Positions 3,674 to 35,911 of a stretch of 64,000 nucleotides of DNA are shown one piece after another. The stretch lies in the sequence record NC_042060.1; one strand, given 5' to 3'. The stretch's first letter is position 1, and the number at the start of each line of letters is the position of its first letter. The notes below the pieces were generated by a model. The model was given only the letters and a program-made list of their open reading frames with translations, was not told where the DNA came from and did no database searches. The position numbers and the translations under genes were made by a program.

Positions 3674-3705
3674 CCTATTTTCCTTTTGAAAGTATTCGAT
3701 ATGAA

Positions 3706-4161
3706 TTAAATGAGTTCAACAATTACCATGTGAGTGAATTTCTCACCAATATGCTTCATGCAGTAATTGCCATAATACCCGCTGATAAAAGCTGCCAGAT
3801 TAGGAGTAGTCACATTGTAACCTTGACTACGGATATAATCATGGATCTCTTTACTGTTAAGGTCATTATTGATTTTATTAAGACTATTGAATACGAATGT
3901 TAACGCAATCCAATTATTGGTATCCAACTCATCTTTGAGTTTAGCAGAGTTGTTGAGCATAAGCACACCAACTTCATCTGCGCTATGACCTTCACTCATT
4001 CGAAATACAGCTTGTTTAGTAATGGTTTCAACCATTGCACACGACTGCACAGTGAGTTGAGCATCTTTTTTACCAATCTTGATTTCAGCCATTGCGGTAT
4101 TGAACATGATACCGGTAATGGCAATGAGACCAGCGAAAGCTGCTGCAATTACATTTTTCAT
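3706..4161 (-). CDS. Secreted two-Cys family protein
   Basis: Signal peptide ending AMA; LTVQSC...CMKHIGEKF. Confidence 0.85.
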   Translation of the reverse strand: MKNVIAAAFAGLIAITGIMFNTAMAEIKIGKKDAQLTVQSCAMVETITKQAVFRMSEGHSADEVGVLMLNNSAKLKDELDTNNWIALTFVFNSLNKINNDLNSKEIHDYIRSQGYNVTTPNLAAFISGYYGNYCMKHIGEKFTHMVIVELI

Positions 4162-28967: not shown

Positions 28968-29570
28968 TCATTGTGTATAATAATTCTTTTTGAGATTATC
29001 CATATCGTAAGAATCATGTTTGAACTCAAACTTCTTAGCTATCTCACTCGAAAAAGCTTGTTTACGTTTTTCTTCTTGTTCACGGATATCGTAAGGACCA
29101 TTCTCTTTAACAAGATATTTTTTATACGGCCCAGTTCCTTGGATATATCCATCAGGAATAATGGTTGTGAGATATTTAGCCTCTACCAACCGGATGCACC
29201 GTCCATAACCAACTTCATTGGCATGACGAACTTGGATTAGTTGTCTATTCTTGGCAATACGTTCAGATATGCATGGGAAGTAAACCGGATCATCTCCTTT
29301 TTTACAGTTACCCATATCAACCTTTGCGTACAGAATTTTTCTATGATTGGCTTCGAAGAAAGCCCGAGCTTCACGAATACGTTGGGACCGAATAGCTTCC
29401 TTAGTTCTGACATTCTTTAGATGTGCAGGTTGTAAAAAAGGATTCATCTTTCGCACGTGACGTTGGATAAGTTTTGTCGTGTAATGAGGTGAATCATTAG
29501 CCATAGCCAGTAGGCTATTGTACATCTCAATCGACATGATTACTTGCTGCGGGTCATTATTGCGCTGCAT
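28968..29570 (-). CDS. Basic hypothetical protein
   Basis: 200 aa, GGAG RBS. Confidence 0.85.
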   Translation of the reverse strand: MQRNNDPQQVIMSIEMYNSLLAMANDSPHYTTKLIQRHVRKMNPFLQPAHLKNVRTKEAIRSQRIREARAFFEANHRKILYAKVDMGNCKKGDDPVYFPCISERIAKNRQLIQVRHANEVGYGRCIRLVEAKYLTTIIPDGYIQGTGPYKKYLVKENGPYDIREQEEKRKQAFSSEIAKKFEFKHDSYDMDNLKKNYYTQ

Positions 29571-32905: not shown

Positions 32906-33082
32906 TTAATTATTAAAAGATAAATCATAATCACTTTGTCTGCGATTCGGATTAACAGGATCAGGATATTTTCCAGTTTTGATAACTTCTTTTATAGCTC
33001 TAAAATCACGTTCTAGAAAATCTAGTTTTTTAACTAACTCTTTTTCTAATTCTTTATTGAGTAGTCTTCTTAATTTGCTCAT
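32906..33082 (-). CDS. 58-aa coiled-coil ORF, not in ORF track
   Basis: MSKLRRLLNKELEKELVKKLDFLERDF...; fills the gap, overlaps the upstream gene end. Confidence 0.6.
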   Translation of the reverse strand: MSKLRRLLNKELEKELVKKLDFLERDFRAIKEVIKTGKYPDPVNPNRRQSDYDLSFNN

Positions 33083-33449
33083 CTACGTATACTCTTACAA
33101 TGAACCAATTGATTAGGCCAAAACCTTTTGGTGTGATGGTAATGTCATCTTTATATCCATTTTTAGTGATTACATTACGTAATACTTTAATTGCTTCAGG
33201 TGGAATAAGATTAGCATTACCGGTAACACTATACTCGAAATAATAACCTACACCTGGTAAATAACCTGATGCAATCTGGTTAGTACCTGTGATATTACTA
33301 ACGTGTTGGAAGTCACTAAAAGCATTCTTGTAGAATAACAAAATATTAGGAATTACTTCATCCCTAATAGTAGAACTAGTAATGGCATCCGCCGATGGAA
33401 AATAAGGTACTAATTCATCTGTTACATTGGTGCTATTAATATCGGACAT
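33054..33449 (-). CDS. Hypothetical early protein
   Basis: 131 aa, GAGGA RBS after promoter 33496. Confidence 0.85.
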   Translation of the reverse strand: MSDINSTNVTDELVPYFPSADAITSSTIRDEVIPNILLFYKNAFSDFQHVSNITGTNQIASGYLPGVGYYFEYSVTGNANLIPPEAIKVLRNVITKNGYKDDITITPKGFGLINWFIVRVYVDEQIKKTTQ

Positions 33450-33495
33450 AATCTTTTCCTCATTATAAAAGGATAAATATCTTTATGGTAATCCT

Positions 33496-33503
33496 GTAAT
33501 ATA
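33496..33503 (-). promoter_or_regulatory. Early promoter TATATTAC
   Basis: Exact motif preceded by TTTAAATC. Confidence 0.85.
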
Positions 33504-33531
33504 GATTTAAATTAATTTATAATGAATGGCA

Positions 33532-33558
33532 TAAAGGAGCCCCTGGTGGGCTCCTTTA
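33532..33558. terminator. Terminator hairpin flanking the putative ncRNA
   Basis: TAAAGGAGCCC/GGGCTCCTTTA; flanks resemble the other minus-strand terminators. Confidence 0.8.
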
Positions 33559-33569
33559 ATGTAATAGGT

Positions 33570-33730
33570 CCGACCCCTATCTAGAGGTCGGTGAGTAGCA
33601 AGGCACCGTAGTTGGGGTTCGTGTCGTTCCTGACGATACTTTAGTACCCCGGTTTATTTACGACTGGATCACCCCCTTAAAGTGCAGTGCGTTTTACGCA
33701 AACTGCCTTGCTCTATATCATTGCACTGTG
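33570..33730. ncRNA. Putative structured non-coding RNA (four-way junction plus hairpin)
   Basis: About 52% GC by hand count over 33570-33713; nested stems; no ORF. Confidence 0.6.
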
Positions 33731-33799
33731 CGTATTTTTATTCGTTAGCTAATCTTATGACTTAGAGTTATATTTACATACCCCTTAAGGAAAAATGCA

Positions 33800-35911
33800 A
33801 TGATAGACTCATTTAGGAAGCTAATGGGCTCGCTATCAATTACTGAAACTGATCAAGAAATTATCATCAGTGGTTTTGATGGTGCTGCATTCATTAGAGA
33901 TATTAACAAGTATTGGCGAACCACTAAATTAGCTACGCAGTTATTTAACACGGTTAGTCGTCGTAGTATTTCATTTTATAAATTCTTTGCTCCTGAAATA
34001 TATTACATGCTAGAAGCAGTAAAGAATTATAGAAGTAGATACATCTCTATTAAAACTGTTAATGCCATCCGTGAAGCAATGCTTCAATATACCTGGTTAA
34101 AAAATACTCGTCCTGTAGATACCAACTCTGTACCAGGTAGACTCAATTTCAAGATGTTAGACAAATTGACATTTACACCAGATGAGTCTCAAAAAGCTTA
34201 TTTTGAAAATTATAATTATCGAATTGACCAGTATGGTTTACGTGGTGATATTGTTGCAGGTAAACCTGGTACTGGTAAGACATTCATGACGATGGCTATT
34301 GCTGAAATGGTTGAGTCGGATATCATTATAGTTGTTTGTGAAAAGAAGTCTATTGATCTAATATGGAAGCCATCTATTATTGAGATGTATAAGGAAAGAC
34401 AAAAAGTATGGTCGACCATTGATGATAAAGCCTACAACGGTCAAAGAATACTTATATCCCATTACCAGGCGCAAGATAAAATAATTGATCTATTAAGAAG
34501 CGGTATATTCAAAGGTAAGAACATTACGGTGATTCTGGATGAATCACACAATATGAACGATCCTAATTCTGCACAATCTCTTAAGTTCCAGCAAATATGT
34601 TTTATGTCTAACTCTAATAACAGATTATTAGCGTCAGGTACCCCTGTTAAAGCACTTGGTTCTGAATTAGTAAGTGCATTAAGAGTATTAGACGATCTCT
34701 TCACCAATGAGGTTGAAGAACGTTTTAAGAAAGCATTTGGAAAAGAGACACAGAAAGGATTAGATATTGTCCAACATCGCTTTGGGTTAATTGCGTACGT
34801 CATTGAAAAGAAAGATACTGAGGTTTTACCACCGAGGATAAAAGCGTATCGTATCAAGATACCAAATGGATCACAGTATACTCTTAATGCCATTAAACGT
34901 GATTGTGAAGCTTTTATTAGAGAACGTGTAAAGTTCTATGCTGCGCGCCGACCAGAAGATGAGAAGTATTGGGCTAAACTAATGGCGATACACGAGAACT
35001 CTCTTAAGACCCAGGCGCAGAAAGATGGTTTCGCTCGCTATAAGAATTTGATTAAAATAATTCAGAAGAATCAAGACCCGCGATACATTGGTGAAGAAAT
35101 TAAAGAATCTAACCAATATGAAAAAATGTTTATAGAGCCAACTTTACCTCGTAATGAAATAGCTGCTTTTAGAGATATTAAATCAGTTATAAAATACGTT
35201 ATGCTAAAGATACAAGGTGAATGTTTGGGAAGGGTTTTAGGTGCTAAACGCATTCAGTGCCATGTGGACATGGTACCGTATATTGACTGGGTTGGTATCA
35301 CTGAATCAACTATGAAGAAAACGATTGCATTTACATCGTTTGTTGAGGTTGTTGATACTGTTGATAAGTACACCAATAAATTAGGTATGCATCCGGCGGT
35401 GGTGTATGGTAAAACCAATGACAATTTACCTCAAATAATCAGTAGATTTGAGAAAGACCCTAAATTAAATCCATTGGTAGCTACATATGCTTCCCTTTCA
35501 ACAGCGGTCCGTATGACGATGGCTGATACTATGGTGACAATTAATTCACCGTTTAGGCATTACATTCTAGAACAAGCTATTGCTCGAATTTACCGTAAAG
35601 GTCAGGATTCACAAACAGTCGTATATCAATGTACTCTCGATACAGAAGATGAACCGAATATCTCAACAAGGTCAGATGACATTCTAAAATGGAGTCAGGC
35701 AATGGTTGAAGCTATTATGGGTATTAAATCTCCATTTGAGATCACAGAGTCATTAGAAAGTTATGTTGATAAAAATAATAATTTTGATGAAAATAAAATC
35801 ATTTATCAGATGCTAAAAGAATCATTTGAGAAGTATGACATCGCAATTGATTTTAATGACTTTGATACACGTATGTATAAACCATATCAGCCCGCATATA
35901 TGCGGTTTTAA
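33800..35911 (+). CDS. SF2 (SNF2-like) helicase, phiKZ gp203-like
   Basis: GKPGTGKT, LDESH, ASGTP, QAIARIYRKGQ. Confidence 0.92.
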   Translation: MIDSFRKLMGSLSITETDQEIIISGFDGAAFIRDINKYWRTTKLATQLFNTVSRRSISFYKFFAPEIYYMLEAVKNYRSRYISIKTVNAIREAMLQYTWLKNTRPVDTNSVPGRLNFKMLDKLTFTPDESQKAYFENYNYRIDQYGLRGDIVAGKPGTGKTFMTMAIAEMVESDIIIVVCEKKSIDLIWKPSIIEMYKERQKVWSTIDDKAYNGQRILISHYQAQDKIIDLLRSGIFKGKNITVILDESHNMNDPNSAQSLKFQQICFMSNSNNRLLASGTPVKALGSELVSALRVLDDLFTNEVEERFKKAFGKETQKGLDIVQHRFGLIAYVIEKKDTEVLPPRIKAYRIKIPNGSQYTLNAIKRDCEAFIRERVKFYAARRPEDEKYWAKLMAIHENSLKTQAQKDGFARYKNLIKIIQKNQDPRYIGEEIKESNQYEKMFIEPTLPRNEIAAFRDIKSVIKYVMLKIQGECLGRVLGAKRIQCHVDMVPYIDWVGITESTMKKTIAFTSFVEVVDTVDKYTNKLGMHPAVVYGKTNDNLPQIISRFEKDPKLNPLVATYASLSTAVRMTMADTMVTINSPFRHYILEQAIARIYRKGQDSQTVVYQCTLDTEDEPNISTRSDDILKWSQAMVEAIMGIKSPFEITESLESYVDKNNNFDENKIIYQMLKESFEKYDIAIDFNDFDTRMYKPYQPAYMRF

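Follow-up and report, generated by a model that had tools for sequence, protein, structure and literature searches.

What occupies the 350-nucleotide (nt) gap between PHIKZ204 and the helicase gene PHIKZ203 in the Pseudomonas phage phiKZ? The question arose from a 64,000-nt stretch of sequence record NC_042060.1 (hereafter the window), in which a first-pass annotation made from the letters alone had placed a structured RNA element between the two genes. The 451 bases around this element are 100% identical to phiKZ and to about 44 near-identical isolates. We found that the element is folded and conserved, and that it carries an invariant stretch complementary to the 3' tail of Pseudomonas 16S ribosomal RNA (rRNA), the anti-Shine-Dalgarno (anti-SD) sequence, at a site that is unique in the window. 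The first-pass annotation had seen part of this sequence as a loop and overlooked the complementarity, which alters the most likely role of the element. The interpretation that we favor, although we would give it slightly less than an even chance, is a separate non-coding RNA (ncRNA) from the minus strand of the window that acts in trans by pairing with the anti-SD tail.

Pseudomonas 16S rRNA ends in ...GCGGCUGGAUCACCUCCUUA-3', as confirmed by an exact 49-nt scan that matched many Pseudomonas genomes and by an Rfam small-subunit (SSU) rRNA match ending there in P. putida. Read on the RNA strand, the invariant stretch of the element is AGG(G/A)GGUGAUCCA, the complement of this 3' end, and the complementarity can be extended to 16-21 nt. 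All 21 positions of the phiKZ sequence UAAGGGGGUGAUCCAGUCGUA can pair with the 3'-terminal 21 nt of 16S rRNA (18 Watson-Crick and 3 G-U pairs), and its three departures from a perfect complement are all transitions giving G-U. Every lineage has 15-19 matches over 19-22 nt to the 16S end, a similarity that 0 of 500 shuffles equaled in 11 of 12 lineages and 1 of 500 equaled in Phabio. Across all lineages, the sole variable base in the 13-nt core is an A or a G facing a 16S U, and both can pair. The complementarity is thus both contiguous and conserved, as would be expected of an RNA that pairs with the anti-SD.

When 20-nt windows were slid over both strands of the 64 kb and scored against the 16S tail, the element site was the strongest predicted partner at -25.3 kcal/mol, compared with -19.0 kcal/mol for the next site (mean -3.9, sd 2.4), and the one exact AGGRGGTGATCC match in the window is the element. 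The runner-up, AAAAAGGAGAUGAUCCG at 29286-29305 on the minus strand, is probably an unusually strong ribosome-binding site (RBS). In all homologues, the predicted duplex of the element with the 16S tail has an energy of -24.3 to -26.4 kcal/mol, and opening the motif within the full RNA is computed to cost 3.6-8.8 kcal/mol, a low price at which net binding would be favorable. Shine-Dalgarno (SD) sequences in mRNAs, including the 'perfect' extended SD UAAGGAGGUGAUC, share this complementarity to the 16S tail, and the duplex of the element is as strong as or stronger than that of any RBS in the window. Unlike these sequences, the motif of the element has no start codon at a sensible spacing and no open reading frame (ORF) behind it, sits within a conserved multi-helix RNA, and remains invariant across genera over 16-21 nt. 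As the annotation had stated, the interval is ORF-free: it holds no ORF of at least 30 amino acids and merely three of 20-27 amino acids. None of these three stands behind the SD-like motif, and a small-protein reading was rejected.

The element is not confined to phiKZ. A related-locus search with the helicase protein returned phiKZ itself alone. Sensitive BLAST gave weak matches (70-85% over 46-197 nt), all intergenic, in PA1C-like phages, phiPA3, Phabio, 201phi2-1, and Viktualia, and inspection of each of these loci revealed a collinear element. In RNA orientation, the parts follow in the same order: after a conserved short block and the first strand of the closing helix P1 come a small hairpin, the invariant stretch, and a long arm; the second strand of P1 then leads into another hairpin and finally a GC-rich hairpin with UUUAUG behind it. 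Intergenic homologues beside the helicase are present in phiPA3, PA1C, 201phi2-1, Phabio, SL2, HPP-Temi, Viktualia, and phiHQ. Pattern scans contributed five more contigs, two viral and three metagenomic; the loose scans (CAAGGC...GGATCACCYCC and the metagenome scan) mostly returned genuine 16S genes or chance matches and were filtered by hand, which left three true homologues from the metagenomes.

A covariance model trained on the clade of 201phi2-1 and contig L014 alone recovered phiPA3 (76 bits), PA1C (68 bits), phiKZ (33589-33717 on the minus strand, 61.7 bits, E 6e-16), contigs L012 (44 bits) and L157 (31 bits), and Phabio (29 bits). The model found a single copy in the 64 kb window, and it also detected the element in D6 (46.1 bits) and Psa21 (39.7 bits), in both cases in the divergent gap adjoining the helicase. 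Noxifer has a reduced version without the hairpin termed H1 below, which is recognizable by eye and scores 13 bits. A search of the 4-20 kb around the helicase turned up no element in Xanthomonas phage RTH11, Ralstonia phage RP12, or Pseudomonas phage EL. Each Pseudomonas phiKZ-like (chimallivirus) lineage tested carries one copy per genome (phiKZ, SL2, PA1C, phiPA3, 201phi2-1, Viktualia, Phabio, D6, Psa21, and, weakly, Noxifer), and as far as these genomes reach, the family appears to be restricted to phiKZ-like phages that infect Pseudomonas. The helicases of the phages bearing the element are merely 48-58% identical to that of phiKZ.

Is the fold as conserved as the motif? The pairings proposed in the first-pass annotation for P1 (33597-605/33704-712), for the helices 33612-618/33646-652 and 33621-627/33633-639, for GCGT-TTT-ACGC, and for the hairpins at 33570-591 and 33532 are all present in the sequence. 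The proposed four-way junction is near-optimal on both strands, with -38.1 kcal/mol on the plus strand (minimum free energy [MFE] -39.6) and -35.3 kcal/mol on the minus strand (MFE -35.9). The fold is also better than that of shuffled sequences on both strands (z = -3.16 and -3.64), and 0 of 200 shuffles equaled it. The GC content claimed for 33532-33790, about 52%, had to be corrected to 45.2%; the core at 33566-33719 reaches 50-51%, and the window has 35.7%. From the 5' to the 3' side of the RNA, the features are as follows.

33720-33745, minus strand: promoter-like block, with an A-rich tract, TAC(G), 14 nt to UAUAG, and (A/C/U)AUG before the putative start
33566-33719, minus strand: predicted ncRNA body, from a putative 5' end at G33719 to the published 3' end T095, and covered in part by the covariance-model match
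33704-33712, minus strand: 5' arm of P1, AGCAAGGCA, extending outward into UAUAG at 33713-33717 in most relatives
33684-33706, minus strand: P4 hairpin, with an inner stem GCGU/ACGC at 33689-33699 and an optional outer stem GCAGU/ACUGC
33659-33679, minus strand: 16S-complementary motif UAAGGGGGUGAUCCAGUCGUA, with its core AGGGGGUGAUCCA at 33665-33677
33607-33662, minus strand: P2 domain, a long irregular hairpin with P2b (33614-618/33646-650), P2c (33621-627/33633-639), and an apical loop at 33628-33632
33597-33605, minus strand: 3' arm of P1, UGCCUUGCU; P1 is helix 1 of the covariance model
33570-33591, minus strand: H1 hairpin CCGACC/GGUCGG, seen in the sequence, with the published 3' end 4 nt past it
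33530-33561, minus strand: H0, a phiKZ-type intrinsic terminator with a 13-bp GC-rich stem followed by CUUUAUGCCAU

In an alignment of 15 sequences to the model, compensatory changes occur at 19 of 33 pairs, and pairing holds in 88.7% of cells, compared with 28-44% when the partners are slid by 1-3 columns; none of the 500 shuffles reached any of the five measures. Because the alignment was fitted to the covariance model, the paired percentage is inflated, but the compensatory counts and the slid controls are clear despite this and despite a model that comes from one clade only. We conclude that the folded element is real. Covariation in the relatives supports P1 (95.6% of cells paired, 6 of 12 pairs compensatory), P2b (100% paired, 5 of 5 pairs compensatory), and P2c (7 of 8 pairs compensatory). 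The outer part of P1 covaries as well (AUAGUC/GACUAU, AUAGAC/GUCUAU, UAUAGAG/UUCUAUA). The inner stem of P4 changes in a compensatory manner between lineages (GCGU/ACGC, CGC/GCG, GUGC/GCAC, CUAC/GUAG), and the H1-equivalent hairpin does so in 201phi2-1, Viktualia, and the PA1C clade. The P2 arm has a conserved A mismatch.

Two of the proposed helices fared less well. Within P2, the inner helices P2b and P2c stand, but the basal helix P2a (33607-611/33658-662) is weak, with 70% of cells paired. Both arms of a further helix, P3, are invariant, so covariation offers no test of it; P3 cannot form in Phabio, and the optional outer stem of P4 competes with it and with the inner end of P1. An alternative pairing suggested for 33721-729 falls within the promoter-like block and is not conserved, which leaves a switch based on that pairing unsupported.

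The statement that the element matched no recognized RNA family held up. Rfam 15, whose families include riboswitches, ribozymes, 6S, tmRNA, and known sRNAs, gave no match across the whole window at gathering thresholds, and at E values up to 10 the best scores over 33400-33850 were 16-18 bits against thresholds of 49-81. ARAGORN found no tRNA or tmRNA genes in the window. Neither a ribozyme, which had also been suggested, nor a riboswitch is indicated, as no Rfam family of either kind matched and the context is inconsistent with both. What was predicted as a structured ncRNA of a phiKZ-like phage is therefore structured, conserved, and without an Rfam counterpart.

Both strands fold, and the strand of the RNA had been left open, with a preference for a minus-strand transcript that terminates at the 33532 hairpin. 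We now consider the minus strand very probable because the terminator, the tetraloops, the alignment fold energies, the published end mapping, and the co-orientation with neighboring genes agree. The published phiKZ terminator motif is BCCYCCCCHWWDGGGRRGGBYTTATKYYGT, a stem-loop followed by YTTATKYYGT, and H0 fits it on the minus strand only, where it reads GGAGCCC-loop-GGGCUCC followed by UUUAUGCCAU. H0 is conserved in all homologues, and its minus-strand loop is UUCG or UACG in 201phi2-1, Viktualia, phiPA3, Psa21, and contigs L014, L157, L176, and L187. A 30-nt sequence identical to the 201phi2-1 terminator hairpin of the element occurs elsewhere in the Psa21 genome (MK552327, 279589-279618), and this recurrence points to stereotyped terminator hairpins in phiKZ-like phages. 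On the minus strand, the apical loop of P2 is a GNRA tetraloop in 12 of 15 homologues (GGGA, GAGA, GUGA, or GCGA; CAGGA in phiKZ), while on the plus strand it reads UCNC. The alignment-wide fold has -26.6 kcal/mol on the minus strand versus -18.3 kcal/mol on the plus strand. Of 11 sequences folded singly, nine have their lower MFE on the minus strand; phiKZ shows no difference, and L014 has its lower MFE on the plus strand. The element shares the orientation of its neighbors and is bracketed by minus-strand terminators in 201phi2-1, Phabio, Viktualia, and others.

To place published transcript ends, window position x was converted to phiKZ coordinate 246567 - x with the strand reversed. We trust this map because the published start P107 at phiKZ 212808(-) lands on the G of the window TATG at 33756-33759. 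In the ONT-cappable-seq supplement, the termination site T095 is placed at phiKZ 213001(+) without an assigned start (bioRxiv 10.1101/2023.10.13.562163). This site corresponds to window position 33566 on the minus strand, 4 nt past H1. The sole published start in the region is P107, the start of the helicase transcript, which lies on the other strand and downstream of the element.

At the other end of the RNA, a TAC-N14-TATAG arrangement has identical spacing in 13 of 14 lineages (N16 in Psa21), usually with (A/C/U)AUG just before the start, and the block resembles both the published TACT/A-rich description of middle promoters and the TATG late promoters. Late promoters of phiKZ end in TAT|G, with the G as +1, and by analogy we infer a 5' end at G33719 (AAT|G); with this start, the covarying outer part of P1 (AUAG...) can belong to the RNA. 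TAC-N14-TATAG was rejected as a general phiKZ promoter motif, as the window holds a single copy where 4.1 are expected by chance. The single copy marks TATAG as specific to the element. TATAG probably belongs to P1, which would leave the A-rich/TAC and nATG segments as the possible promoter. A scan for sigma-70 promoters and simple terminators was uninformative for phiKZ. The minus-strand TATG at 33777-780, once taken as a possible start, is not conserved, and the conserved promoter-like block (33719-33745) lies closer. In place of the RNA of about 240 nt that the TATG would give, the block implies a length of about 154 nt to T095 and of about 190 nt with read-through to H0. In the plus-strand numbering of the phiKZ GenBank record, the putative gene runs from about 212848 to 213001, and to 213037 with read-through.

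If this is an RNA gene, does it belong to one of its neighbors? The surroundings of the element in phiKZ are these.

33054-33449, minus strand: PHIKZ204, flanking gene
33496-33508, minus strand: AAAUCUAUAUUAC, an early-promoter-like sequence for PHIKZ204, seen in the sequence downstream of terminator H0
33756-33759, plus strand: TATG of late promoter P107, seen in the sequence, with its published start at phiKZ 212808(-)
33800-35911, plus strand: PHIKZ203, SNF2/DEAD helicase, flanking gene

The relation of the element to these genes changes from phage to phage. It is divergent from the helicase in phiKZ, precedes the helicase on the same strand in phiPA3, lies between two terminators in 201phi2-1 and Phabio, and is followed by no gene on its strand in PA1C-type phages; the genes downstream of it differ among phages. 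Directly after its terminator, a AAAUCUAUAUUAC block is common to phiKZ, Phabio (contig L004, ~1310-1345), and Psa21 (contig L375, ~3705-3725), and so lies between H0 and the next gene in all three. The published phiKZ early promoter P012 carries TATATTAC, and AAAUCUAUAUUAC looks like this early-promoter core and would drive the next gene; the published phiKZ promoter table lists no start at the AAAUCUAUAUUAC site. A cis-acting leader or riboswitch would be expected in the same-strand 5' untranslated region (UTR) of the gene it controls in all members. The element does not show this, because the helicase start lies downstream of it, an early promoter precedes PHIKZ204, and the PA1C group has no downstream gene. 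Two features expected of an independent, trans-acting small RNA gene are found: a 3' end and a terminator on the same strand (T095 and H0) and no tie to one flanking gene. As for a third, a promoter with a mapped 5' end, the conserved promoter-like block lies upstream, and published maps list no start at it. The element is best explained as a separate ncRNA gene on the minus strand of the window. Cis-regulation at the helicase RBS, to which the first-pass annotation had found a complementary loop, is not supported as a general function, since the CCCCUUAAGG leader occurs in the phiKZ and PA1C clades only, the helicase mRNA starts at 33759, downstream of the element, and the orientation to the helicase is opposite in phiPA3.

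The helicase gene itself offers two side observations. Its late promoter block AAUCUUAUGAC (33745-33759 on the plus strand), whose G is the published start P107, is kept in phiKZ, in Psa21 (contig L375, ~3945-3960), and in the phage of contig L012 (~3965-3984); PA1C-type phages have UUCUAUGAA in its place. The helicases of SL2 (MF805716, 74235-77165), phiPA3 (216447-219608), and PA1C (208738-211889) match in two pieces that span 2.9-3.2 kb, compared with 2.1 kb for phiKZ, and that of PA1C is annotated as two coding sequences. The spans indicate that an insertion of about 0.8-1 kb, whether intron, intein, or mobile endonuclease, interrupts the gene in these three phages and not in phiKZ.

The 16S-complementary motif also appears in a second phage RNA. 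PAK_P3 (Nankokuvirus) is a P. aeruginosa myovirus of about 88 kb that is unrelated to the phiKZ-like phages. It produces an 80-nt small RNA (transcription start 85937, termination site 86017) with GAGGAGGUGAUCCAGC inside; its authors list it as a 5' UTR-derived candidate only and leave 16S unmentioned (Putzeys et al., bioRxiv 10.1101/2023.10.13.562163, Table S7). The motif-bearing half is kept at 85-89% in 123 Pakpunavirus records, within a tRNA cluster, and PAK_P1, K8, and about 120 more Pakpunaviruses have a conserved non-coding GAGGAGGUGAUCCAG(C/U), which in K8 lies between tRNA genes (contig L380, 938-1018, for PAK_P3 85937-86017; contigs L381 and L382, ~270-350). In this family the motif is bracketed by (G)CUG...CAG(C/U), as in P3, and is followed by AUCUCC, a sequence that could fold back to pair with GGAGGU. 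The PAK_P3 RNA and its Pakpunavirus counterparts thus resemble the element in the motif, in the (G)CUG...CAG closure, in being non-coding RNAs of Pseudomonas phages, and in an equal predicted energy of the 16S duplex. The differences are an unrelated phage family, a short RNA whose folding is not significant (z = 0.08), a location in the tRNA cluster, and the lack of P1, P2, and P4.

Among the first 120 viral-contig matches to GAGGAGGTGATCCAGYD, 96 fall in long ORFs, 22 are RBSs, and 2 are non-coding, both of the latter from the PAK family. Since just 2 of these 120 listed matches are non-coding, conserved non-coding copies of the motif appear to be rare and to occur in two unrelated groups of Pseudomonas phages. 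A different kind of occurrence was seen in soil metagenome contigs (L138, L146, L148, L158, L160, L166, L170, L174, L182, and others), which share a conserved non-rRNA block, ...CUGCCGAGAAGGAGGUGAUCCAGUGAGGUACGGUUUACGUUGA..., ahead of a GC-rich hairpin. This block is a perfect complement of the 16S tail followed by a 6-codon GUG mini-ORF, and may represent the leader peptide or attenuator of a bacterial operon.

The complementarity of the minus strand means that the plus strand resembles 16S rRNA, and the extent of this resemblance bears on where the element came from. The plus strand is identical to the last Pseudomonas 16S bases at 17-19 of 19-22 positions, and P2a corresponds in position to the base of helix 45 in the 16S 3' minor domain (helix 45 plus tail; RF00177). 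In PA1C and phiKZ, the antisense resemblance resumes beyond the P2 arm (CUACGG.U.CCUUG..ACGACU; 1-3 of 500 shuffles as good), whereas in the 201phi2-1 clade and Phabio it is absent there. The element differs from the 16S domain in an insertion of about 55 nt at the apex of the helix, in an apparently antisense transcribed strand, and in P1 and P4, which have no rRNA counterpart. RF00177 gave no match at E values up to 10, and the identity extends over 19-22 nt only, with another short block in some lineages. A bacterial SSU rRNA fragment was consequently rejected, as there was neither an RF00177 match nor collinear identity over the whole 3' domain. Because the resemblance resumes beyond P2 in PA1C and phiKZ, it is plausible, though not established, that the element descends from the final ~50 nt of a 16S gene, copied in inverted orientation, and that P2 is an outgrowth of the helix 45 apex.

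How might such an RNA work? It would be transcribed from a phage-polymerase promoter just outside P1 and would form a multi-helix core in which P1 closes the short P4, the long GNRA-capped P2 arm, and a linker or P3 loop; the RNA would continue through H1 and end at or before the canonical phiKZ terminator H0. The linker motif AGG(G/A)GGUGAUCCA could then pair in trans with the single-stranded 16S tail GGAUCACCUCCUUA-3' on host 30S or 70S ribosomes, acting as a 'super Shine-Dalgarno' without an mRNA and thereby occupying or shielding the anti-SD. P1, the GNRA-capped P2 with its conserved A mismatch, P4, and H1 may provide stability and perhaps a second contact. The predicted effect is altered translation initiation or ribosome use in middle or late infection, and the possible outcomes include competition with SD-led initiation, protection of the tail, and ribosome tethering. 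Both the binding and its consequence are read from the sequences and should be taken as predictions. More tentatively still, phiKZ-like chimalliviruses and PAK_P3/PAK_P1-like myoviruses may both encode 'anti-anti-SD' ncRNAs that pair with the anti-SD and reprogram, tether, or protect host ribosomes, the chimallivirus version stemming from an inverted, captured host 16S 3' end.

Several points weigh against a minus-strand, anti-SD-pairing RNA. Published maps list no transcription start for it, the 17 phiKZ ncRNA candidates from ONT-cappable-seq do not include it (bioRxiv 10.1101/2023.10.13.562163), and Grad-seq of early infection did not flag it. Phage mRNAs use SD sequences too, so the phage would have no obvious gain from blocking the anti-SD wholesale. 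Helix 45 of 16S rRNA would have to open for pairing to extend past about 13-16 nt, and in MFE folds the motif is itself partly paired, in P3 or, in phiKZ, as GGGGG with CCCC of P2. Within the core, 16 G-U cells on the minus strand face 28 A-C cells, an asymmetry that does not favor the minus strand, and plus-strand folding of the phiKZ core is favored by about 3 kcal/mol. These last two observations suit a plus-strand RNA that mimics the 16S 3' minor domain as a decoy for Era, KsgA, IF3, 3'-end maturation nucleases, or rRNA-cleaving toxins, as does the plus-strand identity to the 16S 3' end in every lineage (17/19 to 19/22), extended upstream in PA1C and phiKZ (AGUCGU..CAAGG.A.CCGUAG). We nevertheless regard such a decoy as very unlikely. 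No plus-strand promoter lies upstream and the helicase transcript begins downstream of the element, the published 3' end is on the minus strand, and the terminator, UUCG, and GNRA loops are minus-strand features; the plus strand has UCNC at the apex, unlike the GGAA loop of helix 45, is antisense to all neighbors in 201phi2-1 and Phabio, and lacks the upstream resemblance in Phabio and the 201phi2-1 clade. Least credible of all is that the 16S-like plus strand marks a decaying, functionless relic of captured host 16S rDNA beside ordinary promoter and terminator signals. A single copy persists across nine or more genera or lineages with helicase identities of just 48-58%. The motif has stayed invariant and 19 pairs are compensatory, and covariation is not expected of a relic.

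Other explanations retain the minus-strand RNA and change its target. It might pair with C/U-rich, anti-SD-like leaders of phage or host mRNAs, such as the helicase CCCCUUAAGG, and so repress or unmask RBSs. In the phiKZ and PA1C clades, CCCCUUAAGG stands just before the helicase start codon, where it could form ~10 bp with CUUUAAGGGGG of the ncRNA, whose gene is always next to or near that of the helicase. This target nevertheless seems unlikely. Within the ncRNA, UUUAA varies between phages, being replaced by ACGA in 201phi2-1 and Phabio and by UCAA in L014. CCCCUUAAGG is missing from the helicase leaders of phiPA3 and Psa21 and has mismatches in those of HPP-Temi and phiHQ, and the invariant GGUGAUCCA, an exact match to 16S, has no counterpart in helicase leaders. 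We consider it about equally doubtful that the motif and P3 loop serve as a scaffold or sponge for S1, an RNA chaperone, a phage RNA-binding protein, or the SNF2 helicase, with the SD likeness being RBS mimicry. A protein would explain why invariant bases in a loop or linker are flanked by covarying helices, why synteny with the helicase is kept across genera, and why the P2 arm is so elaborate, its GNRA cap and conserved A mismatch suggesting tertiary or protein contacts. An A/G toggle facing a 16S U and 13-21 nt of contiguous complementarity are rather what RNA-RNA pairing predicts, the GGA motif of the RsmA/CsrA type is absent from GGGGG variants, and no protein partner is indicated by the data of this analysis. 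Finally, the element could act in cis as a leader or attenuator that controls read-through of H0 into the next gene, PHIKZ204 in phiKZ or the helicase in phiPA3. In phiKZ, phiPA3, 201phi2-1, and Phabio, a same-strand gene does follow the structure and its terminator, and many phiKZ small RNAs are published as products of premature termination in 5' UTRs. The varying downstream genes, the PA1C relatives without one, and the early-type promoter beyond H0 make this a very improbable account.

Ribosome-associated ncRNAs and anti-SD antisense oligonucleotides are comparable to an anti-SD-pairing ncRNA in that they, too, bind the small subunit directly and modulate translation without being mRNAs. 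The known natural examples are tRNA or mRNA fragments from archaea and yeast that bind elsewhere on the subunit, while the anti-SD blockers are synthetic. We know of no natural phage-encoded RNA that binds the anti-SD, and a full-text literature search returned no phage RNA complementary to the 16S 3' end or the anti-SD. The phiKZ transcriptome papers report other ncRNA candidates and not this one. The candidates from phiKZ-like phages (5'UTR_gp40, 3'UTR_PHIKZ298, and the sRNA upstream of gp182, 201phi2-1 sRNA005) are likewise small, structured, and end at phage terminators, and one of them is conserved across genera. They differ in locus and sequence and are UTR-derived, whereas the element is an independent unit in several genomes and is complementary to 16S; the conserved chimallivirus sRNA reported with 201phi2-1 lies at a different locus, upstream of gp182/gp277. 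By these comparisons, the element is a new RNA family of a known broad kind, the phage-encoded small RNA, and its predicted target is unprecedented.

Few phage small RNAs are known, and most are without known function. phiKZ serves as the model for nucleus-forming jumbo phages, and its takeover of host translation is still to be explained. For an RNA supported by covariation, the 16S anti-SD tail is a concrete and testable target. Even if that target is wrong, the element represents a new RNA family with a model and an unannotated gene in more than 60 sequenced phage genomes. If the pairing is true, the element would provide the first known case of a natural phage RNA that directly addresses the mRNA-docking site of the ribosome, and the pairing would also account for a second, unrelated set of Pseudomonas phage small RNAs that carry the same motif.

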